Source: Macrostomum hystrix
Lineage: Eukaryota > Animalia > Platyhelminthes
Reading direction: 5' to 3'
NCBI GenBank assembly: GCA_950097015.1
Contig: CATNEN010000034.1
Location: forward strand, 1,426,001-1,490,000
DNA: 64,000 bases
This document shows positions 3,901 through 51,223 of the stretch, in pieces. The first letter of the stretch is position 1. Each line of letters starts with the position of its first letter. The translations under genes were made by a program, and so were the position numbers. A model generated the notes under the pieces. It was not told the DNA's origin. It was given only the letters and a program-made list of their open reading frames with translations, and searched no databases.

Positions 3901-6900
3901 TGGTATCTGTGGCTGGTTTGTGGTATCTGTGGCTGGTTTGTGGTATCTGTGGCTGGTTTGTGGTATCTGTGGCTGGTTTGTGGTATCTGTGGCTGGTTTG
4001 TGGTATCTGTGGCTGGTTTGTGGTATCTGTGGCTGGTTTGTTGAATCTGTGGCTGGTTTGTGGTATCTGAGGCTGGTTTGTGGTATCTGTGGCTGGTTTG
4101 TGGTATCTGTGGCTGGTTTGTGGTATCTGTGGCTTGTTTGTGGTATCTGTGGCTGGTTTGTGGTATCTGAGGCTGGTTTGTGGTATCTGTGGTTGGCTTC
4201 CATCCACTGAAATAGCTAAACATCTGACCACTAAAGAAGTTAAGGGGGCTTCTGCCCATCGGCTCATGGACTTTCAACAGTATTTGGGATTGTAAACACG
4301 GTTGTTTTTTAATTCGCAGAGGTATTTTTCAGCTGGCTGAGGCTTCAGGTAGCTTTGTGTATTCTTTTCTGACCAGCTTTGATTAGGCCTGTCATTTTTC
4401 TGTCGTTAAAAATATATTGTAAAATCTGCCGTAACGCACCTGATGCCCGCTGTTTGGGATAAGGCCAGGTTCGCGGGTTGGAATCAAGGGGGATTTTCTA
4501 ACCGCTCAACCACCGCCCCCGCCCATGCAGGTGACGCACAGCATGTGCCAGAGTCCGAGCGTGTATGGTGAAGACTGCTGCGGCGACGACGTGCCCGAAG
4601 CTGCGGGCGTCGCGGTTGGAATTGGCGACAATTCTGACGCGCCGCCGGATCAGCAGGATCAGCTCGGACTGTTTGAGACCGACGAGGATATGAACAATGC
4701 GGGTGAGCCCGCTATTGTTCTGAGCAGCCTTCTGAGCAGATTATTCAGAATCAGGATGAGTGTTACTGATGCGCGGGTTATCACTGATAAGCATTTGGGA
4801 TATAAGGGATTATCAGGATTAAGGATTACTGAAATAAAGGATTATCATGTCTAAGGATTGCTGAGATAAATGACTATCAGGTAGTGGAATTAGCAATGCG
4901 GCGGATTATTAATGATTTTTAATATTTTTTTATATATGGGATTTTCGGGATTAAGGGTTCCTGTAATTAAGGCTATAATAAAGGATTATCAGTATGAGGA
5001 TTAGTGATGCAGCGGATATCAGTGATCCACTGATCGAGTTTAATTAAGCCAATATCCGGATAATTAAGGACAAATATTGGGATAGCAGGGGATCATTCGG
5101 ATCAGAATTATAGCTAAGGAGGATTATCTGAGATATGAGTTAAGAATGAAGTACGCTATTGAGAATCGGGAATGATACCTGGACATTTCATGATTAAAAG
5201 ACAGCAATCACTATTTGGCCTCGGCTTCCGAGCAGAATTGCAATTAGATCAACTGAAGATTCTTTCCCTCCTGCGCATCTGCACTGAAGGATCCGCCTGA
5301 ATCGCAGGAAAAATTTAATCTCTTCTCCTTCCTATTTACTTAGCTGCGGGATTTTCAATAACTGCCCTGTCCCTATCCTACACGTCCCTATATGCCTCGC
5401 GTGTTCCCAGCATCTCACTTCAGCGCATTTCCCTTTTCAATGGAGCAGCTCGCATGGCAATTGGCTAGCGCCCTGATGGGATTCCTCATTCACTATCCGC
5501 TACATTTTGTATTATCTGTCCCACTTTTAGGCCCTTATAATTTTCCCATCAGCTAGCTATTACGCGTTGCGTCTTTGTTATTTTGCTTTGCCTCGAGTTT
5601 CTAAGCGAATGCCTATTATTTCCTACGCAAAATCACGGAAAAAAGTACACGACAGTTTCATTTTTACATTTTAACAGACTTCGATTAGCACATTCGGTAA
5701 TAACCAGCCAAGAGTGAGCTTTATTCTACATTTACCATATATTCCTATACTCGTATTCTGATTGGCTAGTGAGAGACGAGATTTATTGAACATTTTGCCA
5801 GACCTCCCTATTCTCGTATTCTGATTGGCTAGTGAGAGACGAGATTTATTGAACATTTTGCCAGACCTCCCTATTCTCGTATTCTGATTGGCTAGTATAA
5901 GATGAGATTTATTGAACATATTTTGCCAGACCTCCCTATACTCGTATTCTGATTGGCTAGTGAGAGACGAGATTTATTGAACATTTTGCCAGACCTCCCT
6001 ATACTCGTATTCTGATTGGCTAGTGAGAGACGAGATTTATTGAACAATTTGCCAGACCTCCCTATACTCGTATTCTGATTGGCTCGTGAGAGACGAGATT
6101 TATTGAACATTTACTAGGGCTTCCCATACTAACATTCTACTTGGCTAGCGAGACGGGAAATTACTCGTATTTCTGATTTTCTGGCTTCAATTCTACTGTC
6201 GCCATTAGCTAAAGAAAGTTTCTAGAATTGTTTTAAAAAAAACAATAAACAGGGAAGCCCTACTAACCTACTTAGCCACTAACGGATTAGCTGAATATTC
6301 GGATTCTAATAACTGCATAAAGCTGCTAATAAATGTGGATTAAATTTACTTTCTCTCGCCACAGCACACTACGTTTGTTTATAGTTTCATTTCGGCCTGT
6401 TTACACAGTAAAAAATCAAGAGACTGCTTCAAGAGACTGCTTTAGAGGCTCTAGTTTAGGGAGTCACGTGTGGGCAAGGGGGAGAAAGTGGAACTGGATA
6501 GGCTAGGAATTTCCTAAGGGCCTTAGTGAGAGGCCTCACCGAGCAGGCAAAAGAGGTATAAATAGAAAGCCTTAGGTCTGGGAAAAATAGGGATAGATAG
6601 ATGTGGAGCTCCCGAGTAGGGATTTTTAAGTACACTGATGCAGCAGCAGCAGCAGCAAGGGGACTGCTCGCCGTCTGCTCAAACTCCCCTTCAAGCATAG
6701 GTGAAAAAGCGAGAGAGAGAGAGAGTGATGAGATTCGACAACCGTATACTGGAAAGCTTTCTCTCTACCCCATCGGTTCGCTGCTCCTTCCTTGCCGATT
6801 TCTGCTTGTGCCCGAGGCCTGCGGCTGTTTATGAAATGAGGGGCGCTAGTGGCAGTTGTCTATGGGGACAACCGCTTTGTGTGTGTTTTTTATCCATTTG

Positions 6901-21018: not shown

Positions 21019-21748
21019 ACCATAGACAGTTGCGTTTTGGGTGGTTTAGTTGAATACAATTTTATTTTAACCAGAAAATATTCAGTATAATATATGCCGT
21101 TTAATTCATCATAGTCTATGGTTAGAATGTCCGAGGCTGCGTTTAATGGTCTCGAAGCGAGCGTAGCGAGAATGTGAATGTGAATGTGAACCACAGAATG
21201 TGAGTTAAACGGCGTTTATTAGGCCTATTTACGTCAAAGCAGGGTCCCGATTTTCGCATTCCGTCGGGCACTTGGCTTTGGACCAAAGACAAATAATATT
21301 TTTGGTGCAATGAGCGAGAACAATATAATACGATGAAATTAGAATTTTCGTTCTTTGCATTCCTACCAAACAACAGCACTTAGATGTCTTTAAAAAGCTC
21401 AAGATACTTCTGTCTATGGTCCAAAGTCAATCTCCCGGTGGTTCGTTTAAATATTGTTTGAAAATATTTTCTCTGATTATAACACGATTATTATATACAA
21501 CAGAGTGGATTAAATGCTTTTGGCCAATTAATTTCGGCCAGCGACCAAGATTCTTTTAATGCTCACTTTTGGTAGATTAATATCTTCTTTAGTCTATGGG
21601 CAAGACAATCTACGAGTACCAGAGTCATGAAAAATTAATATCGGTTATTAAAACTCTGTTCTTAGACTTTTCTATCTAAAATGTCTATGGCCCAACAATG
21701 CTGCACGCGTAACGGTGCGTTACCACCCGCACTTTTCTTGTCTATGGT
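21019..21748. other. Cluster of six CCATAGAC/GTCTATGG motifs
   Basis: Exact 8-mers at 21020, 21114, 21412, 21592, 21683 and 21740. Confidence 0.85.
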
Positions 21749-30842: not shown

Positions 30843-33800
30843 CTTTGTGTCCCCATCTTACTGCCTAAAACAAAATGCAATCGCAGACTTAACTTTATTA
30901 GAAGCTCACTCGTTGGAGTGGGTGCTAATGTCTATGGTAACTGTACAAGCCCGAACCAATGCCTTTGTACATGCAAGCTAACTATTTACTTATAGATGCT
31001 ATTGGCAAAAAAGCAACAGCCTTTAGTTTCATTTCACTCGACTTAATCGATTATATTGGATAATATTTTTCCTTTGACTTGCCACGCAATCACTCAAACA
31101 AGAATCAATACGCACGTGACTGTTTTGCACTGATGTGAACTTTTTTAGGCGATTTTAAAATACATTTTCGCATTAGATGCCAGATGCAGTTGTGAACAAA
31201 CTCTTTACTAGAACCACATTTTCTCAATCTCAACGCTTTGTGTAATATAGATCACGCAACTATGATGCACCAGACTGATCAATGCACGTCTTGCTTGCTT
31301 GTAGCAATTTTCTGTTGCTGTGTCTCGCCGTTTTCTACAATTGCATAGTCTGTAGTGGCACTTTTTCAAATTTGCTGCCTTTTATTATATATTTCTGTTC
31401 GATTGACAATGCATGTAGATTAATTTTCCCTTATTTTTAAGATGCCATGAGCAGGCCGTTTGAACACTGCTGGTTTGAGTGGCGTTAAGAATGGAAATTC
31501 TTATTTAGAATTGGCATTTCTGTTCAGTTTCTTTGTATACTATTTTCATTTCCCAATGCCTAGTGGCTCTCTGTCGCAATCGGACGGGAGACGGATTAAT
31601 GGGCGAATCAATGCACTCGGTGTACAGAATCTGTTGCATACAAAATTTTCTGCATGACCTCACTCTCACGATCTCATCTGCTTAGCTCAGGCTCTTATGC
31701 TTTGTTTTACTAGAAACAACTGGAAACTTTCAAGCTTTCTTATAGACGTTTCACGATTACGATCAAGCTCTGTCGCAAACTTGGAATGAACAAAATAACC
31801 AGACAACCCGATTAGGAAAAATCCGTCGGGTAAATATGAATAACAAATCAATCAGAGCCCATTTTAATCGACTATTTGCATGCGTTACGCACGTTTTTGC
31901 TACTCTACTTGCAGTAGAAGCACAAGCACAGGCTTGTCTTTTTTTAAACTTTGTAAAAAATCTTACAAGGCGTACCTTCTTGGAGGCTCTGTTGAGATTT
32001 TCATAGAAAACAAAATATCGAGCTTAGACTGTAAAATCCGCGTTTAATTTGCACTTTTCTGCTTTAAGAGCTTCTCACCTTTTTTGACACATTTTTTGAC
32101 TCTTGAAATCTATATTTTTAACCAGCGTCTTTTCTATTGTGCATTGTCTTGCTGGGAACAAATCTTAAACACCGAATTCGATGATCTCTTCGTCATGTGA
32201 TACGTTCGGCCAGCTAGCTAATTTTGTATATGCAGTTTGATCTAGACTCTTTGATTAGCAGCACTTGCCTGTTCCTTCAATGTGCTTTTTAGGAATTATC
32301 TTTTTAGGACCCAATGTCTGTGAGGCTGCTTGCATGCCTCTTGACTTCACGAGTCGGACAACGACTCTATATTACCAAATATAATTGGCCTTCGTGGTTT
32401 TGTCACTCCTTTATCTTGTTTTCTTTTCAGAACCTCACTCTGTCGCACAAACTATAGTTTCCCTCAAGTGTTCGTTATTTACACAAAAGTCTTATATGAT
32501 GAATCATGCTGACAGAAAAGTACAGAAAGCTGAAAACAAAACAGAAAATAAAAAACTGAGAGGCGAACAGAATCCGCTCGTATCCTATATGCCACAAAAA
32601 GCATCTTGGATCACATTAGAATTAAAGAATCAAGAACGACCAACTAAGTTTTTTTCGCACTCTGCCCATCAATAGACAACAGATGAAAAGTCTCCCTCAC
32701 TGCGTGTGCGCGTTTGGGGTGGGTATGTTCGACCGTAGTGGATATCGATTTTTCTATGGGTACATCATCAGCTTGCAAGAAAGTCTGGGAGTGGCCAGCC
32801 TAGGAGGGGTGGGTATCGATTTTTTATGGGCGTAGGCTGAGCGTCAGGGGAGAGAGAAGTAACAGCTTGGGTCCCTCTTCCTGAAAACTGTTGTCTATGG
32901 CAATTACAAGCGCAAAAGCAGCGCTGTTTAGAAGCTCCATCTATTCTAAAGTGACATTAGAGACCTTAACTGCAGAGGCGACGGCGACTGTTCGTCTTCT
33001 AGCACTTCAAAGTTTCTGTTTGGGAGCTGTTAGGTAAGTTGTGTTTTTTTTCTCTGAATAATTTGTATATTTTTAATATTTTTAATGTTATATTTATATT
33101 TTATGAGACACCACTGGCATGCATCTAAAAAATGAAATTAGCCACTCAGATGTCAAATTTACGCATGTAATCTCCCCCCTAGTGGTGGAAGGAGCTTCAT
33201 TTGTCAAATCCTAGCTAAAAGGCCTCAAATGATCCCATTATATCATAGTTAAATTCTTACTAAGTATACATTGAATAGCATGATGAATAAACTTAATATA
33301 AAGCGCTAATATATATTATCGCTTGTTGTCGGATCGTAAAGACTTTATCAAGAGAAGTAATTTATCGAAATTTTACTTCACGTTAGTGTGCTCTGATTAA
33401 TGACCGGTCATTAACTGTAAGACAAACTTCAATTTTAATTTAAAGGGCAAACCAGACAAACGAAGCCACAATTTATTTTAAATTAATTTAGGTAAAGTCC
33501 TATTAAGTCATATTAAGCTTCATATCATTAGCTGTCTTATTTATCAAACGAATTTGCATTCGGAGAAGGACAGAAGGTGCACTTGTTAAAGCTAAACTTC
33601 CCCATCGCCAGATTTTCCTGATTAACGCCGGTGATTTGCATGTTTGACACCACATTGACAAGCATTGCGCTACCCAATAACGCGCATGTGGGACGATCCC
33701 ATCCCACGCGCATGTGGGATGCGTGTTATTGTCACATTCTTTCTCTTATTATTTCTCGTTGTGTAATTTTGTGATTATCAAACGCCAACTTTTCAACATC

Positions 33801-33930
33801 TACCATAGACTATGGTGGAACTGCGAGTTTATTTTTCATATCAACGAGAAATCAACTTCAATGGTTAAGCAATGAACACTTTACAGTTTTTAGTTGTTTA
33901 TAGTTGCAATTCTCAATGACGCAGATGTCT

Positions 33931-35387
33931 CTAACCATTCAAGTTGAAAGTGCAGCCAGAGAAATGACAATCCGTGAAGATAGTTGAGACGTTCTGCCTA
34001 CTAAGTGTAATGTTCTGGTTACTCACGTCCATCAGTCCTAACCAATTCTGTGTTCGTACGAGAATCACTTGATTGCAAAGCTTCCCCCACAGTCGTAGCC
34101 ATGTCTCGCAGCGTGTGGTCACGTTTCCTCGATAGATACCGCCGAAATGTCGACTCAGATTGATGTCCCGTGATATTCATGATGTCGGACAGAGTATAGC
34201 CAGCTTCGTGTAGATCAGCCGTCCTAGTTACTCGAATGCAATGGTTCGTATACTTTTTGCTGAGCTCACACAGGGTGCTTAATCGAGTCATGAACGATCC
34301 TAACCAATTGATCCCACGAACCTGCTTAGTTGAAAACTGCAGCTGTCCTTCTTTATTTGCCATCGGTCTTGGAAAAAACGAATTGTCCTTGGTTTCGTTG
34401 GGCAGGACTTGAAGGTAGGTCTTAATGAGTTCATACTGACCGCCATAGATTCTCGCTTGCTTTGGGTTGAAACCTTTGGCCTTGACTGGATTGGCACTCT
34501 GGTTCTTGGTTCTGAGGTTAGGTAGCTCGTAATACTTCTTGCCGTCGCCGTCTTCTTTTTCTACGAGTATGTCTCTCTGACGAAGGTGTTGGAGGTGCTC
34601 TTGACCGCGCTCTCCCAAGACATACAATAAAGTGTAAATCACTTCATCCTGTAGTCGTTCTCCAGTCGAGCGATCAAAGTAACTGGACAACTTGGTTAGA
34701 TCGGCGCGCTCTATCGGTTCGTAACGCTTCACGCTCCCGCCTTTAGAATGAAAATCCCGCACCTTAACTCGAAGCATGCGATTGGCAGTAGCAAAGTTAG
34801 GATCATCGACGATGTTGAGTTCACGCATTGATAATGAAGTGAAAAAATCGCTGGATGCCGGCCCGAATGCAGACCAAGCTAGATGGCGAGTACGACTCTC
34901 CATTCGGTTTAGAAAGCCGAAAGTAGTAGAACCGCAGGTGCTCGTTGAGGCTACTGGGCTCCATTGTTTTGAGACTTTCAACAGGATGACCCAAGTCACT
35001 CATGTAGCTGGCAAACGCTTTGCCATAAAGGAACATTTGCTCCTTGGTCGATCTTGGTAGATAATCCACCTCGGCCTTGTCCATGACATCAGTAGCAACA
35101 GAAGCTCCATCCTCTTCACATTCCGGCAGATCGACACCAAGCAGTTCATCGTCAGATCGTGAATGATCGGTAATGAAGTTAATAAAGTCCTCCAGCTGAT
35201 TGTCATCTCGGTGATTGTCACTGCTCAGCTCCGCAATGAATGAGTATTCGCTGGATGAAACGCCATCGAGACTATCAACCGGCAGATGAGACCAATTGAT
35301 AAGATGCGTAGCGGTCATGTTTAAGGCAGGCAAGCGAAGACGGCTTAAAATGAAAAACTGAGAAGTCTTCGCTGTAACTTCGAACAT
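33931..35387 (-). pseudogene. YR1: Crypton/DUF3504-like tyrosine recombinase, full length, two frameshifts (~34845 in a T run and ~34050)
   Basis: Complete catalytic set: GERG (R), TKN (K), NHCIR (HxxR), TGH, RRY (Y). N-terminal core-binding region FYYFRLSKPNGESYSPSSL. C-tail FTDCHFSGCTFNLN lies in a shifted frame. Confidence 0.88.
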
Positions 35388-35432
35388 TTAAGACCAAAGT
35401 TTCTGACGAATTACCATAGACGGTATCTAAAT

Positions 35433-36345
35433 TTAGTCATGCATTATCAACCGTTTGATCTCCTGTAGGGCGACCGTCACCTCACGTCTCAGAATTCCCA
35501 TTCTCCGGGTGTGCAATGTGATGCCAAGGTTTGCTGCTGCAGCCGTATTGAGCAGTTCCGCACGAACTTCAGGCTGTGAGAGCAAGTGTCCGACGGCAGT
35601 CTTTAAGCAGGAGCCAGCCATTTCAGCCACATTTAAAAAGGGCGAGTATGGAGCCAGCTCTTTGGTGGAATGACCCAGGAACATTGTTGTGAGCGCGAGC
35701 GCCATCATGCACCAGAGTCCATGGTCCGTCCACTAGCTCATTTAACTGAAACAAAAATGCTGCGAAATGGCCGCTTGTGAATCCGCCATCCACCAGCGCA
35801 TGGTGTACCAGACCGCATTGGGGTGAAACCGCCAGACAAATTGTCAGGTTTCTCCCTCGTTGTCCGCTCGTAATCATCAGATTCCCTCCCATACCGTCAT
35901 TCAACATCCAACTCGCGAACTGCCACCGAGCCTCCTTCACCACGTCCGTGTTCCAGTTCACAGTAATCTGACGACTGGCCTTTAGAGTGATGAGCTGGCA
36001 GTCAAGCATCCGACTGAGCGTTGAAAGACTTGGTGCCTGTTGGCCAGGATTCTGAGCCTGTAGGTGGTCTCTCATGCTGGCAAGGGTGACATTGCCAGGG
36101 GTTTCTTCAATCAGAAGCTTCACACTGTCAATCAGATCTTTAGTAAGCAGCTTCGGTCGTCCGCCTCCTTGGGGTAGTCTCTCAACAAGTCCCTCTGCAG
36201 CATATCGTTCAATAATGCCCCTTGCCGTGCGCTTGTTGATTTCCAAGGTTTCAGCCAGCCGAATCCAATCTCTGCCTTCATCATACGATCGTGTCAGGCG
36301 CAATCTATCCGTCGTCGATACTGGCTTGTACGGTCCTCTCAGCAT
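35433..36345 (-). mobile_element. IS630/Tc1-like transposase, degraded (HTH domains and C-terminal D...E; first catalytic D region deleted; frameshift)
   Basis: HTH-like LAETLEINKRTARGIIERY...GGGRPK; LVHDGARAH; LAPYSPFLNVAE. Confidence 0.8.
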
Positions 36346-36654
36346 TTTGAAAACAGGATAGAGAAGGACTGCCGAATTTAAATTGCTGCGATTTTAGCAA
36401 CATATAGACACTTCACCAGTGCGAATTCAAATGCAATTTCGGCGAATTCAATCTCGACTTTTAGCTTAATTTCTATGAGCTTACTATTTTTAGACCACAT
36501 TGGCTTCTATGGGGAATTGTTTTGCAGTTTCGGCGAATTCAATTGCAAAAAGGTATAATTACGATATTAAAAAATTACAACCAGTATGAACGCATGGGGA
36601 GACTCCAAAGTTTGTCTCGTATAGTTATAGTCTGTCATAAATAGAAGACCTTGA

Positions 36655-36798
36655 TTACTCGAATACCATGTTGATCAAATTGTTGCTACCGTCAATGCTA
36701 ACACGCATCTTCTTGGTCGGACAGGCCTCGATGAGAACTGGCCGAGGAACAGGCCCGTCAATTGATGTTAGAGCGGCATCGCGACTGGTGATCGTCAT
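36655..36798 (-). pseudogene. C-terminal remnant of a YR5-type recombinase
   Basis: Manual translation MTITSRDAALTSIDGPVPRPVLIEACPTKKMRVSIDGSNNLINMVFE* matches the YR5 tail TKKMRIIADEDSNVVQFVFE*. Confidence 0.65.
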
Positions 36799-36996
36799 CA
36801 CTTGATCGTCATCACAGATTTTTGTTGTTTCGATGAGAGCTCACAGTTATATTTCACCACCAATTGTAACACGAACTGGAAAACATTTAAACAGCAACGC
36901 TTTAGATACACGATAATCTCACAGGTATAGTTACTTCGGGGTATAGTTACTTCGCACAGTTAGACGCGTCGACTGACGGTGCCGTTCTTGGACATA

Positions 36997-38468
36997 TTAC
37001 GGCCGGCCGGAAACGTGCACGTGAAATTCGCAGTGTTTGAACGTTCCAGATATGGCGGACGCCAGCATCTGCAGATCCATCCCATGCCGCACCATGGCAG
37101 GTTGCTGCTGCTGCACTACAACTCGCGCACCAGATTCCACCGTCTCCGACGCTACACACCGGGACTCGGCCGTGTCCGCAGCAGGCGCTCCCATTGCACT
37201 AATCTTGGTTGACAGCTCCGCCATTTCGGCGTCCCGCTTCCTGTTGCCACGAATGTACCTCGCGGTAGCGGTATCCGACTTATGTCCGGTGACCGCACCT
37301 ATGTCGTGAAGGGAAGCTCCAGACGCCTTCAGCTCGGTCGCGACAGTGACGCGTAGACACTGCCCGGTGTACTCCTTGCTCAGGTTGGCGGACTTGGATA
37401 TAACGCGCATCATATTTCCAAGTGTTAACCCCCACTACCTGCTTTGCGAAGTACCACGATCCGCTCAAACCGCGGACTCTAGGACGCAGGAACAGTTCGG
37501 AATTTGCCACTCCCTCCTCGCGCTTCGACTCCTTGATCTTCCGCAAGTACAGCTCGACACACTGGTATGGGCATCCGCTCTCACGAGTCTCGACCAGGAC
37601 ACTTTGCTTCCTATCCTCGGCCGACCTCGTTTCCAAGCTCCCGCGCACGTTTTTGGACTCCATTGAGGCCAACCGGAATGCACGCCGGCCATTGATGGTG
37701 CATCCGATCAGGGAATCTGTAGTCAACTTTCTGAACCATTCGCGACCCCGCAACCCGAAATGCACCGCAACTACATAGTTCTACATAGTTCTACATATAC
37801 ATCTCTTGCTGAAACTTCATCGGATCACTCCTATCGAAGTAGACGCGCAGCTTTACGAGGTCCACCGTCTCCAAGGCGCAGAATCGCATCACGGAGCCAC
37901 CTTCCTTGATGAACATTGCGGCCGTGGCCTTCAATTGCAGATTTGCCTTGGCGAAGTCTTTATCTTCGATGATATTGATTCTTCGGGTACGCATCAGATA
38001 TCTGAACACACCTGCACGCGCGGTAATCAATGAGGCCGGGGCATAGTACCCGCCATCTAGTTTGCGGATGAAGGCGTAGAAAATGCGCAGGGCGGTAACC
38101 ATCTGTTGAACACCTGCAGTCTCCAGATTGCACGGGTAGTTCTTCATTTGCAGCACCTCGTTAAATTTGCGCAAAGCCCAGTTCTCCTGCGTAAGAATGG
38201 ACCGCGGCGTGTTGTCCAGCTGCATCGTGCCCATCTCGTCCAGCAGGGCTTGCTCGGGGTCTCGGTTGCCTAACAGATCCTCGAACTCCGTCGCGTCCAG
38301 CTGCGCCAGGTCGTCAAGCATAACTTGCATAGCGGACTCCCGTTGGACTCGCTCGCCAACCTCGGAGTTAGACGCACCCACGACGTCACCTTGAGGCATG
38401 TGCACCAGTCCTAATGGAACGCCGGTACTTGCTTCGTAAATCGGATCTCCAGTCATCCTTGGGAACAT
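36997..38468 (-). pseudogene. YR2: Crypton-like tyrosine recombinase, full length, disrupted by a 10-bp tandem duplication (~37771-37797) and a frameshift (~37410)
   Basis: FYAFIRKLDGGYYAPASL, FDRSDP..FQQE, HFGLRGRE, SKN, CPY, FLRP, YTGQCLR, TGH, ARY; tail FKHCEFHV. Confidence 0.87.
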
Positions 38469-39499
38469 GGTTCTAGGCAGCCCGGTAATGCCACGGCTCG
38501 TCTCGCTGTCTTACAGCCTTCCCCAAACTGAGTTCTCTTGCTGCCCTAAGTCAGGCGGTCTACTTTTGGACCATAGACATTTCGGGCGTGACCAATCGAC
38601 AAAATAATCGATTGCTGCACGCCCCGCGAGACCGCTGGCTATATCCGCTCCGTGAGACTGATTGTTGCACGCCCCAACTGTCTTTGGTCCAAAAGTATAC
38701 AATGCCAGTGATAAACAGCTATTCGTACTGCAAAGTTTTAAACCTCGGGCGCTACGCGCCCTCGGTTAAAAACATTGCAGCACTCATAGCCGTTTATTAT
38801 TATATCATTGTTCTATGGCCCATCCGTATGCGCATGCTTTCAGTCGCCAATGTATACTCGTATCATATGTGACTTTTTAATAGGCAGTCAGAAGGCGGGT
38901 GCAGGGTCAGTTTTCTTAAATTTTGAATAGTTTTATTACATTATTATTATTTTATTATTATTATTATTAAGGTACGCATGCCGATTCGGTGCTGATTATT
39001 TGTTTATTTGATGTTTGAGGCTGAACAATTCGATTTTTAAAAAAGAAGGCGATAGGAAAACAGTAGCATGCATAAGATTAACTTTAGGTAAATGAAATAT
39101 TTGAAAAAAAACAAATTTTTGAAGTAAACAAAGGTATTAAAAAATGAAATATTGAAATTTAAAGAGAAAATTAAAACTGACTGTTTTTGTGCTCCCGAAA
39201 GTGTTTTTGTGTTTATTTGTGATTGTGTTTTTGCATTCTAACTATGGGCCTCAGGGCAGTGGCTTTTTTATCTAGCTTTAAGTATGCTTTCTATGAAGTC
39301 CACAAAACTTTCTGTTAAGTCTGTGCTTTCCTGTGTCATTAAATAAACCATTTTGTCATCAGCTGTTAGGCTTTCGAGATTTCGAACAGTACCTGCTACT
39401 TTCTCTATGAATTTATTTCTAATTGCAACATAAACGGACCAATCGCATCTAAAGAGAATATGAGTTTCGTTCTCTACCTCGACTTTACATTTTGGACAT

Positions 39500-40650
39500 T
39501 TCTGTGTTCATAGGCGATTTTCGGTCTTACAGTGCGTAATGCCTCACAGGCCAGTTTGTGCGCAATGTGTCGGGACATTGTGCGCCTTTGTTCTGGGTTA
39601 GAGATTATTGTTATGTACTTTTCTCTGGAGAAATCTTTCTTAAACGTGTAATAGAAGTGGAAGTACATAACGTCGTGAAAATGCACAATGGGAAAGCTGT
39701 ACATGCAGCACGTGTATAAGGAAACTCGAGAAAAATTTTCGATTCCTTCTTCATATGAAATGCAAACAGAGAGGAAAATAACAGTCACACAACGGGACAA
39801 GAGCTGACTATGATAAATTGTAAAGTGTTTGCTCCAGGTTCGCTCACTGTCCACTCAGCTTCAGTATTTTTCTATCGTGCACTTTATCAGGCGAAGGAGC
39901 GCTCTTTGTTCCTCGTTGAACATAACCCTTGAAGAAGCAGTTAGTGAGGCGCACGCAGCATCCCAGAACATCTGCTTCAGGGAAGTAAAACTCGCCAACG
40001 GCAGCAAAAAATTTCCGCACTCGCAAAGCACATGACGGTGATCGCAGCGAAATGAAGCATCCGAAACAGAGGCAAGCAAAATTGAACAGCCACTTTGTGG
40101 CGGGTGCTTCAACTTTCCACGGGAAATCATTTCAGTGAATTCACCGAGTGGGGTGTTTAAATTTTCGGCAGGATCTTCACCGGCAATTTTCTCCTTAAAC
40201 GTTATGTAGCCGGAAATGTTATTATTATGCCTCAGTTGTCCTTCACCTCAGCAATCGTTATTTCCATCCAAGTTCAAGTAACACAAATGCATGCCTTACC
40301 TGAAACATAATAAACAGATGCCTTTTCAGCAATTGATAGGCTCTCAGCTTTGACGTAGCAGTCATCGAGCGTCGAAAGTTCTTCGTCTGAAAGGGGCGTG
40401 TCGCAGCAAAGTCCTTTGTTGTGCACGAATCCATCCAGCTCTAACACTGTAGAGTTTCATTCGTCGGAGTCGCGTGCTGAGAAGAACTGGCTCTACTGAA
40501 ATAAAGTAATTGCCTCCGCTCATTTGGCGATAAACACCAAATTCTGCTTCCAGAGGATCACTTAGCAATTCCGCTATGAGAATGTACGTTGCACCAGATT
40601 CGCAGAGCAGTCGTTCGCATAGTTCTATGATTGCATGAATAGTGTAAGCT
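39500..40650 (-). mobile_element. 3' part of a P-element/THAP9-like transposase, degraded
   Basis: LAYTIHAIIELCERLL...YILIAELLSDPLEAEFGVYRQMSGGNYFIS (catalytic E region), ISGYITFK, SRGKLKHP. Confidence 0.72.
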
Positions 40651-40699
40651 AATGACCTCTTCGTCTCTGACGTCAGAGATTGGTGTCTTGTTCTTCCCT

Positions 40700-41281
40700 T
40701 CCCTCGCCCTCTTCGATCGGCTTATACTACTCGACGTCGCCTCCTTCTTGGTGAAACTTTCTAACCTGCACTCGAAGCATATCGTTTGCTGGCTGGAACT
40801 CTACACCGGTGATGCTGTTTACTTTCAATTTTAGAATTACACGCAGGTACCTCTGTATTCCTGCCTTATACAGACTAGAGAAGCAGGCGAATATGACTTT
40901 CCATCCTGCCGCTTCAATTTTAAGTAGAAGTACCTTAAGTACAGTTTCGGCCGGCACTTCTGAAACGTCTCTTAGTTTTTCACTCGCGAGGAAATTAAGG
41001 AAGCGTTCACCGTGAATGTACATCTGCTTCCTCGTTTCGGCAGGTAGGCTTTCAATTTCTACTCGATCCATCTCGCTAACATCAAGTTGCTCACCATCTA
41101 GGCACGGCAGTTCATTGTTAGAACGATCACTTTGAATGTAGTCAAGGAACGCGGCAGAGTCGTCGTCGCGTGGGTCGATGTTTGAAGTCTCGGAAATAAA
41201 GTTCAGTTCGAACGATTCGACATGGCCTAATTCGTTGATAGGCAGATTGCGCCAGTTGATTGGAAAATGAATGCCTTCCAT
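40700..41281 (-). pseudogene. YR3: 5' half of a YR1-family recombinase, truncated before the catalytic domain
   Basis: N-terminus INWRNLPINEL...SLPAETRKQMYIHGERF is homologous to YR1 INWSHLPVDSL...YLPRSTKEQMFLYGKAF. ANDMLRVQVRKFHQEGG matches ANRMLRVKVRDFHSKGG. Confidence 0.8.
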
Positions 41282-41774
41282 TCTATCGCGACTCTGAAAT
41301 TGATTATACTCACCCGATGAACAGCGACTCTTTAGAACTCCGTCGTCTTGACCATAGACATATCATTCTCTATGATTTCGTGTGTTCTGCTGTTGTCTGG
41401 AACTGAACTAACTGATTTTTTCTAACCCTTGGCTTTTACCATAGACGGACGGCAGATATCAATATCTGCCGTCCGTCCCCCACCCACTTTGATTTCTAAC
41501 CCCTAGCTGACAATTTGGACAATGATGGTTGTCTGGAATTGAGATTTCAGTTACGTTACGCGCTACGCACGCTCGTGCATATTTGAAGCAATGAAAAGTA
41601 CTTTAATACACTAATAAGAACCACAGACAAGATTTAAACCGAACAATTCAATACGTTTTGGTGGGAAATTCAAACGAATTCGAACAATGCGAAAATGGTC
41701 ATTTGCTTAGTAGGCAGCTCGGTAAATTTTCAGAATGTATTGTATACATTTTGCCAGTTTCAGCGACGTTCTAG

Positions 41775-42080
41775 TCACCGAGAATTGCCTGCCGAGCAAG
41801 GCAGCTCGTCAAACCTAAATTGCACGAGTGTTCTTCCGGCGCGGGCCTCTGCGGTCGGGTTGATGAAGCTATCCGCATTGGCAGCGATCTCTTGCTTGAT
41901 TGCCGCCTTCCAGTCGGGGATTGCGCTCTCAAACGGAGTCAGAAATGAGCTGCATTTTGGCAGCCTGCGAAATTCAATTGCGCCAACAGATTTCTGCAGT
42001 TCGGCGTCATTATGGCTGGATACATTATCGAAAATTATGTAGGCTGGATGCTGGATTTGAGAGTGCTCCAGGTTTCCCAT
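41775..42080 (-). mobile_element. IS630/Tc1-like transposase C-terminal fragment
   Basis: YIIFDNVSSH...RRLPKCSSFLTPFE (D...E motif). Confidence 0.7.
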
Positions 42081-42099
42081 GGTTATCTGCAGGAATTAA

Positions 42100-43250
42100 G
42101 CGAAATGCTCCTTCGTCATGCCCCTGTTGTAGCATTGGTTTGAGGCGACATGGCCATACACACCATCAGTTGGGGCCTCGCTGGCCTCCTATCACGCGAT
42201 AAGCACGAACTCCACGCTGCGCTCTCCCTTGTGATCGCCGATTCCACGTGTCGAAACCGAACTCATAATCGTAGATACATATCTTCGGCTGGTTGACGGC
42301 GTCTGCAGAGCAACACCATGTGGCGTAGGCAAAGCGTTCCTCAATAACTTCCGGAGCTTGCCACGGTTTAGCCAGGGATGCCACGGTTCTTGCGCACTGT
42401 GCCAGTGAGCAAGGTGTCCCGCTGCAGCAGCAGGCGACCAATCTTTGAGAAGTGAACCAGCTGTCCGTAAATACGTGGTAACCAAGATGAAGCAAATTTC
42501 GGCAAAGCGCAACTACAACTCTCTCGCTCATCGATAAATTCTGGCAGCCAAGTCCATCGCCAAAATGCTGATTGGCCTCAGCAGATGAGTGAATCTCAAA
42601 ATGCCACAAGTACGAGCTGGACTCATAGCTGGACTCGTAGCTGGACTCAGATTCGCAAAAGCAGTTATGATTTTATGCCATATCTATTCCTCTTCGTGGG
42701 AATTTACTGTTTGAACTGTAGTCTTCCTTTGTACAGAACAAGACTCTCATCAATCGAGAGCCGTTGACGCGGCATATAGATGGTTCTGCACAGCTCTTTC
42801 ACCTGCTGCAGAAAAGGATACATCTTAGCTAGAGGCCCAGCTGGATTTGGAATGTCCGTACAATCATAAAAGCGCAGGCAGGACAAAATCTGCTTGAACC
42901 TGTCTCTATATGGAGAGCACAATGGAAGACCGGTTCTTTTGACCAGAAGCTGGATATTTCTGGCTTTTATCAAGACCCATCAGAAGCGTGATTCCGATCA
43001 GTTTTCTCCCCTCGTCGACAGTGCAATCCTTCTAGTTAAGTACAAATTTGGGGACGGTTCCGTTATCTAAATTTTCATGGTACGTGTTCCATGCTTTTAA
43101 GTTCGTCCAAGTTTCAAGCAACTCGTCCGTCAAGTAGAGCTTGATGAAAGCAGTCTCATTTCCATCGGCCACTTCAGGTTGCTGCAACCCGGGCTGGACT
43201 CCAGGCACCCAAGAAACTCTACCAGTGGTGCTGGTCGAGAATCAGTGCCT
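42100..43250 (-). mobile_element. piggyBac-like transposase, fragmented
   Basis: RDRFKQILSCLRF, PRQRLSIDESLVLYKGRLQFKQ, LGYHVFTDSWFTS. Confidence 0.82.
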
Positions 43251-43846
43251 TCTTGAACAAGGTTCCAATTTCCGTCAGATTCGCCTTGATCTTCTTCTTC
43301 ATCACTGGAGAGCAGATCAGTAGATCAATCTACAGAATCATTATCGGCAGTAAACCAACTAGCATCTCAATGGCTATCAAAGTCTTCACTCATTTTCAGT
43401 TTCAGTTTCAAATAGAATATACAAAGAGGGACAGGGACAAGAGGAAACAGGTTGTGAATTTAATTTCCTTCATGTGTTTGAAATTATAAATATCTTTATG
43501 GTCAAACTTCATTCGATTTTTTTGTCTAATTGCCTTACATTTGGCTTCGAGCGTAAATCAGCGGATTGCCTTACTCCACTGACACTAGACAGTATAGTAT
43601 TCTTGTTTTGATTCTACATGAATTCATTTAAGCGTGCGGATATGCTTTCGTCTATGGTAAATCTTCATTTAAAATGTTAATTCTTTCAGTGCAGGAATGA
43701 ATTTTCATTTTGATTTTGATTTTGCGGGCAGGACTGCTTTAGGAACGGCCCAAGGACTTCTATATAATAGCATCTGGACTGGAAACGAGAAATAAATTTC
43801 ACAATTATTTTACCACATGAGGCCAATGTTTAGCCGAGCACAGCGG

Positions 43847-45506
43847 TTTAGCTGTTCTCCACCACCGCAGGTGAGGCCAGCCGGGAGCTGCGGCTGCAGC
43901 TGAACGACGCCCCCCTCGCGACGGACCGCCAGCCCCGGTTTCTCGGCGTCATCCTGGACCGCCTGCTGAGCTTCACCGCGCACGCCGCCAACGTCGCAGG
44001 CCGCGCCCGCGCCCGGTGCGGCGTCCTGGCCGCGCTCTCCGGTAGCAGCTGGGGCGCCAAGCAGACCGACGTACGCCGGCTCTACACTGCCTACGTGCGG
44101 CCGGTGCTGGAGTACGCGGCCGGCGCCTGGATGCCGTCGGCCTGCAAGACGGCCATTGAGCAGCTGGACCGAGCCCAGCGCCTGTGCGCGCGCGTCATCA
44201 CCGGGTGCCCTCGGAACACCAGGTCGGAGGTGCTAGAACGAGAGGCCGGCCTGCCCCCGATGGCGGTCCGCGCCGAGATGCACGCCGGCCTTCTCCTCGA
44301 GCGCGCCCTCAGGCTCCCGCCCGACAACCCGCTGCTCGCCTGCGCGGCCGCCGAGGGCCCATGCCGCCGCCTCCAGAGCGCCCGAGGCTGGCGGGAAACG
44401 GCGACCAGAGTCAGCACCGACGCGGGCCTGAGCGACTACCCGCGCGAGCCCGTTTGCGCTGTCCCCGCGACGCCTCCCTGGGCCAACCTGGACACCGTCA
44501 CCTTTGGTCTGCAGCTGTCCGCCCCCTTCTCCCGGTGCGACCCGCCTGAGGCACGGAGAGCGGCGGCTGAGCTAACGCTGGCAGGCCTGCCGCCCGCCCG
44601 CACGGCCATCTGGACTGACGGAGCGGCAAAGGATGGCGTCTCGGCCGGCGGCAGCGGCGCCCTGGTCGAGCCCGACACGGCACTGTGCGTCCCAGCCGGC
44701 CACGTGACGTCCAGCTTACACGCTGAGCTGGTGGCCATCGCCGAGGCCCTCCAGTGGGTGTTGGCGGCACCGGACCCGGCCGAGCTGTCGCCGGTCCGCG
44801 TGTGCTCGGACTCCCTGAGTGCGCTGGCGGCGCTCGAGTCCGGCCCCGGCTCGACGGGCGTCACCACTGCCGATGCCATCTGGGCCAGCCTCTCCCACCT
44901 CGCAGCCGGAGGCGTCGCTGTCCACCTGCAGTGGGTCCCGGGCCACGCGGGCATCCCTGGCAACGAGGCGGTCGATGCCATTGCCAAGCGCGGCTCCGCG
45001 CTGCCGCAGGCTGAGGCCCACATCCCGCTGGCTGCGGCCCAGGCCGCCATTCGCCGCCACTGCCTCGCCCGCTGGCACCAGCTGTACCGCGCGGCGGCCG
45101 CCGACGCTGCGGGCACGAGCTCGCTGCCCTGGCACGCCGCCTGCACCTCGGGCCACCTGCCGCCTCCTCCGCCGACTGACCTCTCGCGGCGGCACGAGCG
45201 GCTGATCTGCCAGCTGTGCGCCGACCGCTGCCATGCCCTCCGGGGCTTCCAGGCCGCGATTGGCGCCCCGGTGGCCCCCACCTGCCGACTCTGGGGCGAG
45301 GGCGACGAGACGGCGACCCACGTGCTCCTCGCCTGCCCCGCCCTGACCGCCCACCGCTGCCGCCTCTGGGGCCCCTGCCCGGAGCCCGGGCAGGTCTTTG
45401 ATTGCTGTGCTTCCGTGCTGGCCCTGCTTGGGAAGGCGGGCATCATCTGATGCCCGGTGCCATGGGCCCTGGCCCGCGCACGCCCGAAGAAGAAGAAGAA
45501 GAAGAA
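43847..45506 (+). mobile_element. 5'-truncated non-LTR retrotransposon (I-group/Ingi-like: RT thumb, RNase H, degenerate zinc knuckle) with (GAA)7 tail and GCACAGCGG TSD
   Basis: Open frame from ~43850 (PRFLGVILDRLLSF...YVRPVLEY) through RNase H (IWTDGA, AELVAI, CSDSLSAL, QWVPGH.GI.GNE.VD) to stop 45450. Tail 45486-45506. (A)GCACAGCGG occurs at 43837-43846 and 45506-45515. Confidence 0.92.
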
Positions 45507-45861
45507 GCACAGCGGCTCTCCAGAGAAACATATCTACTTAAGCCGTCACACATCTCAAGGCGCCTACATTCCAGGCATGCACATTGAATTTGGTGGAAAT
45601 CCTATGTTGTGGAGAGAAATGGAGTCTACTTTTTTCGGAGAAGCATTTCCAATTGATTTCAATGGCGTTTCAAATTGGCATTCCATCGGTCCCCAGCTGT
45701 TCACCATAGACACTTGTTCCAGAACTGCCACGACTTATGGCCACGTAGTGGCACTAATTTGAATTGGATCAGATTTCCTAGTTGTTTCATTTCATACTCA
45801 ACGCAGTTTCCTCAGTTTTCTTTGTCAAGGATTTCTGCGCCATAAAAGCATATCCTTCACT

Positions 45862-46625
45862 ATGGTGAACAAGTGTTCCGCATTCGGTTGCAAGAGCGGC
45901 TTCGCTAATAGTTCAACGCCAGGTACTGTGACATTTCATTGCTATCCACTCAACAACCCGAGTCTATTGAAAAAATGGAATAAAGCAAATCCGAGGAAGG
46001 CGTTTCAGCCCACGAAGTATTCTCGTATCTGCTCGCTTCATTTCACCACTGAGGACTTCGTCGAAACAACTCGAGATAGCAATAGCACTCGCAGAGAGAA
46101 GATAAAGGCCAGGTGACCAATCGTTATCTGAGGCAAGATGCGGTGCCAACTATCTTTCTTAATGCACCTGCATACCTTTCTTCTGTCCGGCAAGCAGCTC
46201 GGAGCACATGCTCTGCGACATCATCTGCGCGTCTGGAGGCTGAAAACATGCGTCTCAATGATCAAATCGCCGACTTCTTTGCCAAAGATTCAATTATCAG
46301 TTGCTCGCCACGAGAAATTCAAGAATTGCTCGAATCAGAGGAAACGAGACCAGATGGCTTTCTATGTGGCCAATCGAATTGAGTACTGTGGAGGCCAAGT
46401 GAGTGGATTGGACAATAATGGAGTGGTTGCTTCAACCTACTGTTGCTTCTTGATAAAGTCAATTGCAGGCAAGTACAAAGACATGGTGTCCATGTTTCCT
46501 CTGGCAAAGCTGACAGCACAGAAGCTCAGTCACTGGTTCTAGGATGTCATGGATTTGCTGCGTAGCCTGCAGTTCTCCGTCATTGCAATATCCGTTGATA
46601 ATGCACCAGTTAACAGAAAGTTCGT
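45862..46625 (+). mobile_element. 5' part of a THAP-domain P-element-like transposase, frameshifted and truncated
   Basis: THAP: MVNKCSAFGC...FH.YP...W...P...RICSLHF...LRQDAVPTIF. Then CFLIKSIAGKYKDMVSMFP and SVDNAPVNRKF. Confidence 0.82.
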
Positions 46626-47069
46626 CGCCGATTTTAACTCAGAACTCGATTTTAAACATAAATTAATAATCTGAAGAAAGGAACTAGCCAGTTAACATTA
46701 CATCTCTGGATTTCCGACATTTGAATTTCCGATCTTGCATTTCCCAATTTGACAGATTCCATAGAAAGCAGGGGAAAAACTGGCCTCATGAGGTAATGGG
46801 TATTTCTTCGCTTCCAGTCCAGATGCTATTATATAGAAGTCCTTGAACGGCCCATCCTATGCCCGCTGTCGGTCTGGGCCATAGACATATGGAATGAAAG
46901 CAAAAACAAATATATTTAATGGAGTACGGCAGCGCATAAAAGTACAACAGTAATGACAAGAGCAGTAACAATAATAACAAACAGGGGAGATGAAACAACA
47001 CACAATTAGCCACACCCATAGTCCAAGTAGTCATAGACAGACTGTGTTAAATGTAATTTCTCTGTCCGA

Positions 47070-47114
47070 ACCACAGATACTATAATAATCAACAGTTATT
47101 ATAGTATCTGTGGT
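47070..47114. other. Perfect 19-bp inverted repeat with 7-bp spacer
   Basis: ACCACAGATACTATAATAA-TCAACAG-TTATTATAGTATCTGTGGT, 27 bp beyond the YR4 stop. Confidence 0.92.
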
Positions 47115-47140
47115 CCGAACCGGCAAGAGATCAGAGACAC

Positions 47141-48700
47141 TCACAGGAAGAATAACAGGCGACTACCATTCTTTTCTAGTACAGCAGTCGGCAGAACTCC
47201 ATGAATGTCACTAGTACGCTGCTCGCAATCCATGGTAGCCACTTTGATAGTGCTCGATGTAAGTCCTACGCTCGGACCAGACGATGGAGATGTGACATAG
47301 CTCGTGGCTTGTTCAACGATCAAACCAGATGATGGCGAAGCAATGGTCAGAGCGTCTGACAGTTGCCGTTTCTTTGTTGGCGAGATCCGTTTTGTCTACC
47401 TCTGGATTGACTCTGGTCTTTTGTGACCAGTAACACATTGGATGTCGCCGACTGCAATGCCTTTGTTTGATAATGTCGTGACGACAGTAGCACGAATGCA
47501 ATGATTTGTGTACTTGCGTGATAGATTCGCCCTTGTAGAGATCCGAACCATCATGTCGTTCAGGGTGTTCTTACCGAGAACTTGAGTTGCGCTGTACCAC
47601 TGTTCCTTAGATAATTTCGCCAACGGCCTTGGAAACAAATCACTCACACCAGGAGGCAGCAAGGTTAAATAAAGGCGCACTGCGGCAACAGGACACGTTG
47701 ATGGGTTATTGGTGGCATACATCTTAATCTGCTTTCCCGTACATGGGTTGGCAGCATTAGTTGTCTTCTCTTTACCGGACATGACCAAGTCGATGCAGGC
47801 AGTCCCAGCCTCCTCAGAGAAGACAATAGCGTCCTTCGTCAGCTGGCGAAGCCACTCGCGTCCTCTGAAGTTAAAATGCGTACACAACTTGTAGAAAACC
47901 TCATCTTGTAGTTTCACTGGCGTAGTTCGATCAAAGTACGATCCGAGCTTCACAACATCCTCGTCGGTGATGGCTTGAAAGCCGCTCTGCTCTTTAACGT
48001 GTCTGTTCCGTTTCACGGATGCGGCTAGAGTAGCTTTGTAGGTCTTGTCAAACTTCTGAAAGGCTACATTGCCAATCACTTCCAAATCCCTCACCTCTTT
48101 AAAGTGACGATGGAGGCTGGCACGAAAGCCTGCCAACGTGCTGACGCTGTAGGCATCTCCGTCTGCCCTTCGTAGGGATGCAAATCATAAGCGCATGTAC
48201 TCAACAAGATGCCTTAGAGGCATGCTGTCAATACAATCAGGAAGATTCTCCTTGCGCAAAAATGTCCTAAATTTCTCCACACACTGTCTTGTTTTGGCAT
48301 CTGTAGAGGCTACGCGAGAGGCCGTCTCCACGTCTAAAATCGCACCCACTTCTTCAGGCGATAACTCCCTGAGTTGATTATCACTGTTCGCTTCGGCGGC
48401 CAAATCGGATACAAGGGCGTCCAAAACGCCGTTGTCCAACGCACGACTGTGTCCAATTCCAGGTACAGGCAGGCCGGTGTATTGGTTAAACAATCGTCCA
48501 CGGCCACGCAGTTGACACACAAAGTCGATCTCCTCGCGCTCCAGACCGTTAATCTCTCCTCCCTCTATACAGGAGTAGTCTATCATGTGTATGCGTTCTA
48601 TAACTAGAATGAACTGGAGTGACACGTAAGCTGGAATGAAAACGATATTTCTGTCTGGCTGTTCTATCTGACAAGAGAGATGATTCTCTATCGAACTCAA
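47141..48700 (-). pseudogene. YR4: Crypton-like tyrosine recombinase, single reading frame with two in-frame stops (48185-48187; 47396-47398)
   Basis: YMRL*FASLRRADGDAYSVSTL, FDRTTPVKLQDEVF, FNFRGRE, CPV, LFPRP, YTNHCIR, TGH, SIQR* followed by an in-frame tail to ...SRLLFFL*. The true start may lie downstream of 48700. Confidence 0.88.
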
Positions 48701-49144
48701 AGGCTTTTCTGGAACTGTATTCTAGAAATTTGTCTATGGTTAATAGTGGGGGCTCTGCCCCCACACCCCGTCAAGGGAGCAGAAGGCTTTTCTTCCATAG
48801 AATATCATTTTCTAGCGGGCCAAGAAACGTGACTTGTTCTTCGTTTCCGTTCAAACCAATGCAGTTTGCGTCGCGGGCCGAGGAATAACGTTTCTCGGCC
48901 CGCCCTTAGAATCAAGAAGGAATACTAATCCTTCACGCTGTCTAGGGCAGAAAGGACAGCGTGCCCTATAAAGCCTGAAGGATTCATATATTCCTGCACG
49001 GTAATAGACAGAATTGTATTTTAATAAGAACAAACAAGTGACACAAAATGAGAAATATTGACAAAGAAGAGTAACAACAGTAACGTATTAAAGCAATGGA
49101 ACACTCAAACAGACAATAGCTCGTAGATCAATTTCGATCCTTAT

Positions 49145-50676
49145 CTACTCGAAAACGAACTGCACCACGTTGGAATCCTCATCAGCGATGATCCTCATCT
49201 TCTTTGTTGACGCCAACGTAGTCGGCTCGCTTGTTAACAGCACTTCAGACTGCACCGCACTCCGAATGCCGACCGATGAAGTCTCAGAGCCAGTTCCGTC
49301 AAGAGCAATAGTCAATTGTTCACTCATACCCGCCATTATAGTGCCTCTTCGTTTTCCACGTCGAATATACCGTTCGACGGATGTACTCGACTGAAATTTT
49401 CACATAAACGTAAGAATAATTCTATCAGATGCAATGTGCAAGCTTTGCTAAGTTGTGTAAACACAGTGTAACGGTTTTCAGCTTACCTTGTGCCCCGTCA
49501 CTTTAGCGATGGTTTCTACGGCGTATCCAGCCTCGTGAAGTTCTGTAACAACGGTCGCTCTTACACAGTGACCTGTGTACGGCTTCGAAAGATTTGCCTT
49601 TTCAGATATCGTCTCCATCAGCGGCCCTAAGGTGTTGATACCAACAGCTTGCTTGGTGTACCAGATTCCGTTTGGTCCAACCTGTTGCTTCGGCCGAAGA
49701 AAGAAATCGGTGCCGTTCCAGTCGGGAACTGCAGCAATTTTCGATAGATACAGTTTGAAGGCCTCAACAGGGCAGCATTTTGATCCTGGCTTAGCAACCA
49801 TAGGAGCCTCCTTGTTGTCATCACAGTCGCGAATATCCACCGATCCCTTCACATTCTTAGAAGTGCTGCTTTGTAGCTTGATCGCCGTCATGCCGTTCGC
49901 AAGGACCGTCTCGCTGAACGAATTCGCAGTCAGGCCACGCAACCATTCACGGCCACGATTGCCATAGTAGAAGATCATATTGAAATACTGCAGACGGGCT
50001 GGTGTGCTTCGGTCAAAATAGCTGGCCAAGTTCATCAGATCATCGGATTCAATCGCATCGTAGTGCCGAATTCGTCCTCCCGATTTTAGGTACGCATTAC
50101 ACACATGCTTTACCATCAAGTTCGCAGCGTGAAAGGCTGGCTCGGCAATAATATTTAGTCCGCGCAGCTTCATAAAGTAGCGATACAACCCGACAATGGT
50201 GTCAGGAGAATAAAATCCTCCATTGGGTTTACGCTGCGAAGCATAGAAGTATCGAATCCAGCGTGCGAGTTCTTCAACAGAGACGTTCTTGAAGTCAAGA
50301 TGCAAATTGCAGCTCTCAAGCCAGTCGGTAAGACGCTTGATAATGGCCTTCTCCTTGGAAACGCTTGTTCGGCACTCATTGTCTCGTTCCAATTGGTTCG
50401 CGAGATGATCCGTCGAGATGGTTCGTCGAGCGTAGCCAGCGATTCGGGATCCGCAGATATCAGCTTGGCCAGCTCATCATCGAAGTTGACATCTGCTACC
50501 AAAGCTGTCAGTTCGTCGACAACTCTCTCTAGCTTGCTAGATGTGCCAGCTACGAGTAGAACCATCTCCTTTTTACTAACTCCACACACAGACACGTAGC
50601 GCAGGTCTATCAATGGACCAACCAAATTTTTGTCACTCCGAGTGGCCGTGGTTGATTTCAATTTTCTAAATAACAA
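49145..50676 (-). pseudogene. YR5: Crypton-like tyrosine recombinase with a 96-bp intron (49391-49486), a frameshift (~50400) and small in-frame deletions
   Basis: FYASQRKPNGGFYSP, FDRSTP, GNRGRE, SKN, CPV, FFLRP, YTGHCVR, TGHK|SSTSVERY joined by a GTAAGC...TTTCAG intron. Confidence 0.88.
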
Positions 50677-51223
50677 ACACTCTTATCACTACGTAACTAA
50701 CACCAGCCATTCTTCTTCTTCTTCTTCATTCTGCTTGCAGGATTGCTTTTGTCTGTGGTAAAAATCCTCGTGAATTCTGTTGAAACAGTTTTTGTCTATG
50801 CTAAATGTATTTTTCATGTGGGGGCTCGGCCCCCAGCCCCCGCAAGGGGACTGCGTCCCCTTAACCCCGCTTCCCGCTGCACCTCCCTTCCACTCTAATT
50901 GATCCAACAAGAATAATATTCCAGTACGAAAACTCTTTTCTTATAAAATCCGATTTCGTCGTTAATGGACGTTTAATGGGCGCATTCTAAGGCACGAATC
51001 TATCGTCTATGGTTGGAAATGCGAAGTCTTGAACCAGTGTGCCATATAATGGTCCCGAAAACGGGGGCCCATTAAGCCGTATAATGGGCGCCAAATAATG
51101 GGCCGCAAATTATTTATTGACGCGAAACGTTTCAAACATGTTTAAACAAGTAGAATAAGCGACAACTAAGTAGTTAATAGTCAGTGGCAGTAACGGTCAA
51201 TACCCAGCGTGAGGTAAACATCG

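Follow-up and report, generated by a model that had tools for sequence, protein, structure and literature searches.

Elements of the CryptonA (DUF3504) type carry a single tyrosine recombinase (YR) gene with DUF3504 and Phage_integrase domains, and have no reverse transcriptase, terminal inverted repeats (TIRs) or target-site duplications (TSDs) (PMC3212892; PMC13465315). Cryptons are thought to insert at a short core that matches the target (PMC3212892). According to published descriptions, animal Cryptons lack terminal repeats, and those of fungal DUF3504 elements (Glomhopper) are poorly conserved (PMC3212892; PMC13465315). In the literature searched we found no conserved end sequence for animal or DUF3504 Cryptons, and a single review in which Crypton and Macrostomum occur together. 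Here we analyse a 64,000-nucleotide stretch of the genome of the flatworm Macrostomum hystrix (contig CATNEN010000034.1, positions 1,426,001 to 1,490,000; hereafter the window), in which the 8-mer CCATAGAC/GTCTATGG recurs among seven Crypton-like YR units. The first-pass annotation had proposed this word as a shared recombination site punctuating the units. We find that its link to YR units is real and extends genome-wide, and that it does not form the joint between them.

The locus resembles CryptonA elements in gene content, in the missing TIRs and TSDs, and in the short matching words present at both ends and in the target. It differs in the exact subterminal 8-mer held in common by very divergent families, in terminal palindromes of ~100 bp, and in co-oriented nested pile-ups. 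The TATGG termini mentioned in the first-pass annotation for one Crypton group belong to CryptonS of oomycetes and diatoms (PMC3212892). The motif contains CTATGG, and ATAATGG, ACAATGG or ATATGG is found at the true 5′ ends here. However, TATGG in CryptonS is a terminal direct repeat of 5–6 bp, whereas here the exact 8-mer lies inside the element and the mapped crossover core reads A(T/C)AAT. The arm and accessory sites of lambda-family integrases and the subterminal repeats of Ac/Ds (AAACGG) and En/Spm offer a further likeness: multiple copies of a short word, in both orientations, lie within ~300 bp of both ends and apart from the cleavage point. In contrast to those systems, no separate arm-binding domain is evident here, the word also occurs outside recognisable elements, and its binding is predicted. 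Integron attC sites are likewise imperfect palindromes of 80–110 bp that vary between families, carry conserved short words at the arm bases and occur in co-oriented arrays; here, unlike in integrons, the seams lie off the conserved word, every unit brings a recombinase of its own, and attI and a common promoter are absent.

From its placement in the elements we favour, with about even confidence, the reading that the word is a subterminal end-recognition site of CryptonA-type transposons. A YR binding site had been offered in the first-pass annotation as an alternative to the recombination site, and this alternative, as predicted from sequence only, is the one that we now prefer.

Definition of the word and its association with YR genes

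The 8-mer occurs 19 times in the window, exactly as first counted (the 11 positions originally listed are also exact), compared with a mean of 1.43 and a maximum of 4 in dinucleotide-preserving shuffles. The 9-mer ACCATAGAC occurs 14 times, against 0.29 expected and ~2 predicted from its genome-wide rate of 6,757 copies per 220 Mb (42 contigs searched); the reversed control has 1,805 copies. Over-representation of the word is 3.7-fold genome-wide, with another seven-fold within the window. A 20-bp tandem array at 3542–3900 of the window contains, by chance, the reversed control word CAGATACC.

Genome-wide context was taken from 200 kb sampled from contig C1, together with position lists and pattern counts. 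Flanks were unrelated at 47 of the 48 motif sites in the window and the C1 sample, and the sampled sites have in common a longer, asymmetric pattern, TTTT-K-R-CCATAGAC-A, with T never present at −1. One-mismatch variants are at background (47 observed, ~47 expected). Since the word is enriched, its flanks are unrelated apart from position-specific preferences, and its near variants remain at background, we conclude that it is real, sharply defined and asymmetric. A literature search with the word itself returned primers only, and the Macrostomum genome paper gives no promoter motif. Binding sites of RFX, SMAD, Cdx/Hox, RUNX and CTCF were considered, as were miRNA seeds, and none fits.

The genome contains at least 150 DUF3504 matches. 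Within C1:0–3.2 Mb, all three DUF3504 genes have 9-mer copies within 3.6 kb, and 10 of the 68 non-tandem 9-mer copies adjoin DUF3504 genes as against ~0.5 expected, a count that is a lower bound as only part of the candidates was scored. The YR units of the window share 26–40% protein identity, and each of the seven remnants keeps the exact word in its non-coding ends, where its chance expectation is ~0.01 per 300 nt. Copies lie 75 nt inside the 3′ end of YR1, 68–71 nt inside that of YR4 and 131 nt inside the boundary of a C1 family (L033); the stretch from the 5′ end of units to their start codon holds further copies. As originally reported, open reading frame (ORF) starts follow the word at distances of 26, ~101, 70 and 31 nt in YR1, YR2, YR3 and YR4, respectively; the YR4 ORF starts with TTG, and its first ATG is ~136 nt from the motif. 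As in elements with subterminal sites, the word is thus present more than once near either end and is kept among relatives. In common with Cryptons, the elements encode a DUF3504/Phage_integrase YR and occur as dispersed copies with unrelated flanks; in YR1, the one family with an empty site, the ends are short direct repeats matching the target, with no TSD or TIR. An intact 515-aa ORF of a YR4 relative (L005) scores 39.7 bits for DUF3504 and 36.3 bits for Phage_integrase, both over the Pfam cut-off, and the R..HxxR..H..Y blocks are visible in its translation.

Inverted pairs of the word 65–95 nt apart were found at 137 and 187 genomic places, compared with 0 for controls. Among these are many imperfect palindromes, which belong to different families and have the word at the bases of their arms; some have the YR1 loop (GAGTGGCGAAGCCAC) in common and different stems. 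Direct pairs (4,712 versus 943 for the control) are roughly proportional to the overall enrichment. A module in which a GTGGGGGC-NNN-GCCCCCAC hairpin is followed after 8–20 nt by the word is common to YR4, YR5 and two C1 sites. A hairpin beside the motif as a general rule was dropped, the enrichment being weak (mean stem score 15.4 versus 13.7; strong stems at 8% versus 4% of sites). We also rejected the idea that the ~100-bp motif-bounded modules are independent mobile units; in the one family tested, homology goes 131 nt past the motif. As judged from its distribution, the extended word TTTT-K-R-CCATAGAC-A is a putative conserved cis-element of a diverse DUF3504/CryptonA-type superfamily.

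Crossover points, seams and co-orientation

YR1 gives the clearest view of an element end. The window copy (33728..35459, minus strand) is frameshifted and lacks its 5′ end; complete copies at three other loci (L001, L003 and L004) are 1,932 bp long and reach beyond it. They contain the YR reading frame only, and YR1 is therefore a one-gene element with no reverse transcriptase. In comparison with contigs of two other runs, the window copy is 29 nt shorter at 34033 and one base longer at 34827, which accounts for its split reading frame. The left boundary is sharp at 33727/8, and the same ends were recovered in an independent DNA run. At the 5′ end, in gene orientation, the flank gives way to ATAAT-GGTTAGTTGT-GTCTATGG-TTTTAGGC ... 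GCCTAAAA-CCATAGAC-ACAATATTATTGTCTC, a terminal palindrome of ~100 bp in which the word begins both arms. The dyad ACCATAGACTATGGT (33802..33816, plus strand), 75 nt inside the 3′ terminus, is kept in 5/5 copies; this dyad and that at 46879 had both been noted in the first-pass annotation. The copy 26 nt upstream of the YR1 ATG (35413..35421, plus strand) is internal, and homology continues through it.

A pattern search of the genome identified an unfilled paralogue of the L003 YR1 target at C11:3829169–3829254. The words flanking the inserted element are ATAAT and ACAAT; in the empty paralogue a single ATAAT is present (one family, one empty site). Because the L003 flanks, when joined at a single ATAAT, reproduce the unfilled C11 sequence almost base for base, we conclude that the 1,932-bp YR1 element used a short A(T/C)AAT core for its insertion. 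Its first motif copy begins 10 nt inward of the 5′ crossover, and the L003 target itself sits between two direct motif copies, 21 and 34 nt distant. A short YR1 variant at L002 begins 7 nt past CCATAGAC-ACAAT.

Repeat families were mapped onto the window by genome searches with two halves of the YR region. Homology continues through the motif in every unit with multicopy relatives, namely YR1, YR2, YR3, YR4 and the further C1 family (L033). An exact motif copy was found at none of 21 mapped seams, and at none of 15 listed joints in two DNA and two RNA-library runs. Since homology between related copies extends through the motif and no seam lies on it, the motif is not a crossover site. The proposal of a shared recombination site would have homology between relatives end at the motif, and in the flank alignments it does not; the comparison of empty and filled sites likewise places the YR1 crossover at A(T/C)AAT and not at the motif. 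Nor does the word form a 5–6-bp direct repeat at both termini as in CryptonS: exact copies lie 10–290 nt inside the ends, and AATGG or TATGG is present in the true termini. The 5′ termini AACAATGGG (YR3), ACAATGA (YR2), ATATATGA (YR4) and ATATGGC (a family at 50943) are variations on the CryptonS TATGG termini.

All seven YR units of the window lie on the minus strand. Genome-wide, 16/18 neighbouring DUF3504 genes within 12 kb of each other are co-oriented (p = 0.0007), with the caveat that a duplicate array on C10 and C41 may include two of these pairs. DUF3504 genes are grouped in local arrays, of which those at C10:89–111 kb and C41:556–583 kb resemble mirror duplicates of each other. In the window, tandem duplication does not explain the co-orientation because the units belong to different families. 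Several insertions lie near resident motifs: YR1 in L003, a YR3-family copy 35 nt from the motif of another family, and YR2 beside CATTG-TTCTATGG. The locus also carries unrelated insertions (a TIR element and a nested RNase H element).

Further units, neighbouring elements and isolated copies

The YR2 unit (36842..38810, minus strand) has a 5′ terminus, 38810, that is common to four copies, and an imperfect terminal palindrome of ~100 bp at 38694..38797. Its motif copy (38570..38578, plus strand) lies 232 nt inward of the 5′ terminus, ~101 nt before the ATG, and an RNA-library contig continues across it. At the seam, the end of YR2 and an adjoining 136-bp family overlap by the 5-nt CATTG (38806..38810); the 136-bp family ends there in CATTG-TTCTATGG, where TTCTATGG is one mismatch from the motif.

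A YR3-family fragment occupies 40704..41553 (minus strand). The motif copy 70 nt upstream of its ATG (41351..41359, plus strand) is kept in 6/6 copies at ~90% identity; at a second upstream copy (41438..41446, plus strand) the 8-mer is present in all copies and the base at −1 varies. Full YR3-family copies have a terminal hairpin: its stem is 33 bp long, and its 37-nt loop contains a motif copy. The loop is inverted in L008 relative to L009–L011 (flip/flop), with unique flanks directly beyond the stem.

YR4 (46845..48954, minus strand) is interrupted inside its 3′ end by a TIR transposon (43752..46844) with 33-nt TIRs and an AACGGCCC target duplication, which carries a motif copy of its own (45703..45711, plus strand). 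Nested within that transposon, at 43852–45507, is a young, GC-rich element of 1,656 bp that encodes RNase H and has at least 14 copies at ~99% identity. One motif copy (43650..43658, minus strand) lies just outside the displaced YR4 3′ end, and another, a partial dyad (46879..46886, plus strand), lies 68–71 nt inside the true 3′ terminus. The copy upstream of the YR4 ORF (48732..48740, minus strand) is 6 nt from the conserved hairpin GTGGGGGC-TCT-GCCCCCAC (48746–48764), and alignment with flanks places it more than 200 nt inside the 5′ end. A loxP-like palindrome at 47064–47121 lies ~220–280 nt inside the 3′ end and is thus internal, not a seam. Upstream of YR5 (49151..50676, minus strand) the hairpin-plus-motif module is repeated in decayed copies. 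The motif copy at 51005..51013 (minus strand) lies 35 nt inside the junction ATATGGCAC, where in L009 a YR3-family copy abuts the 50943 family. In one open frame at 51827–52705, the C-terminal part of a YR runs on into a DDE domain of the IS1595/Merlin type. Because the frame crosses a seam at 51673/4, two fragments have probably been fused here by chance.

Outside the YR units, isolated copies lie at 6858..6865 (minus strand), at 32893..32900 (minus strand, 8-mer only) and 266 nt downstream of the Frizzled stop codon (30930..30938, minus strand). A cluster of seven copies occupies unique non-coding DNA upstream of the Frizzled exons (21019..21748); it contains an eroded inverted pair (21265–21291/21411–37), and no YR remnant was found near it. 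The first-pass annotation had noticed no copy in host exons, and the Pfam-supported host ORFs of the window are indeed all motif-free: Frizzled (27485–27700 and 29152–30664), an Egalitarian-like gene (55401–56066) and a phosphatase (62061–62957).

On C1, ~7.4-kb repeated units with four to five motif copies each and ORFs without a Pfam match occupy L031–L033 (C1:0.97–1.03 Mb), and a 405–429-aa ORF recurs in L030 and L033 at 95% identity. At 515.4, 750.5, 1762.5, 2124.1, 2171.1, 4861.6, 5821.5, 5891.1 and 6343.9 kb of the same contig, unrelated minisatellites with periods of 16 to 80 bp carry the 8-mer once per unit.

Candidate roles of the word

Under the end-recognition reading, the recombinase, or a needed co-factor, would bind the word and so mark and pair the element ends, with integration proper taking place at the short A(T/C)AAT(G) core. 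Resident ends would present the same signals and cores, so that new copies could insert into or next to old ends, always in one orientation, and such insertion might give rise to co-oriented pile-ups such as that at 33–53 kb of the window. A broader form of this proposal is tentative and, in our judgement, rather doubtful: that the 8-mer is a recombinase-recognition word common to an entire superfamily of animal Cryptons, whose families would integrate into each other's ends in a fixed orientation.

Several observations weigh against end recognition. A lambda-type arm-binding domain is unsupported, because Pfam detects no extra DNA-binding domain in the recombinases and their N-termini look acidic and of low complexity. 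The orientation of the word and its distance from the 5′ end (10 to ~290 nt) differ between families, and non-tandem direct pairs are about as frequent as inverted pairs. Of the dispersed C1 copies, 58/68 are not beside a detected DUF3504 gene; C1 sites lie beside or inside host genes (formin, an internal otopetrin exon, a Hint module), some of them intronic, and the seven copies upstream of Frizzled lie in unique DNA without a YR remnant. Moreover, a Tc1-like DDE transposon (HTH_32; L030:5131–6826, C1:951.1–952.8 kb) bears the word in both of its ~160-bp TIRs, ~108 nt from each end.

The Frizzled cluster, the presence of the word in the Tc1-like TIRs and in another TIR element, the predominance of dispersed copies away from detected YR genes, and the position of copies 26–137 nt upstream of four YR start codons would all suit a site for a host factor, either a transcription factor or a chromatin protein, that several transposon classes have acquired and that may serve as a promoter or enhancer for YR genes. 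We regard this as the main rival, though the less likely of the two readings. A promoter would explain the upstream copies only, because the word also occurs in terminal palindromes and near 3′ ends, where its distance of ~70 nt is conserved. With respect to the gene, the word faces either way; the remaining host genes of the window do not have it; among the C1 sites, several fall in introns; and an RNA-library contig reads across the YR2 copy. It is also unusual for a transcription-factor site that one-mismatch variants are not enriched. That the word might instead have no function, as a relic of common descent or a passenger in repeats and minisatellites, is suggested by its many copies within multicopy elements and by the minisatellite location of about one-third of the first 100 genome matches. 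We consider this improbable: flanks are unrelated at nearly all sites and show position-specific preferences, there is no surplus of one-mismatch decay products, and the word is exact across families as divergent as those of the window.

The idea of an att- or attC-like crossover site, with the locus as an integron-like cassette array joined at the word, is largely refuted, and we give it equally little credence. It draws on the array of co-oriented YR units, on the CryptonS elements with TATGG termini, and on the few seams that touch motif-like words (CATTG-TTCTATGG at 38806, and the L002 YR1 variant after CCATAGAC-ACAAT). Against these, homology passes through every exact copy tested, neither the mapped seams nor the listed joints fall on an exact copy, and the empty site puts the YR1 crossover at A(T/C)AAT. 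Furthermore, the units are not joined at the word, and the seven YR remnants occur one per unit, each unit thus having a recombinase gene of its own.

The exact word in very divergent families, the mapped core and the intact recombinase genes bring a little-understood question, that of end and target recognition by eukaryotic Cryptons, within reach of bench tests. The word can also serve in practice to annotate Crypton ends, together with non-coding derivatives, in flatworm genomes, and may explain why Cryptons gather in co-oriented nests. If the broader, superfamily-wide form of the proposal is correct, the word would be the first defined cis-signal for CryptonA elements, and the pile-ups would be the equivalent, in a eukaryote, of integrative elements that accrete in tandem at a shared att site.

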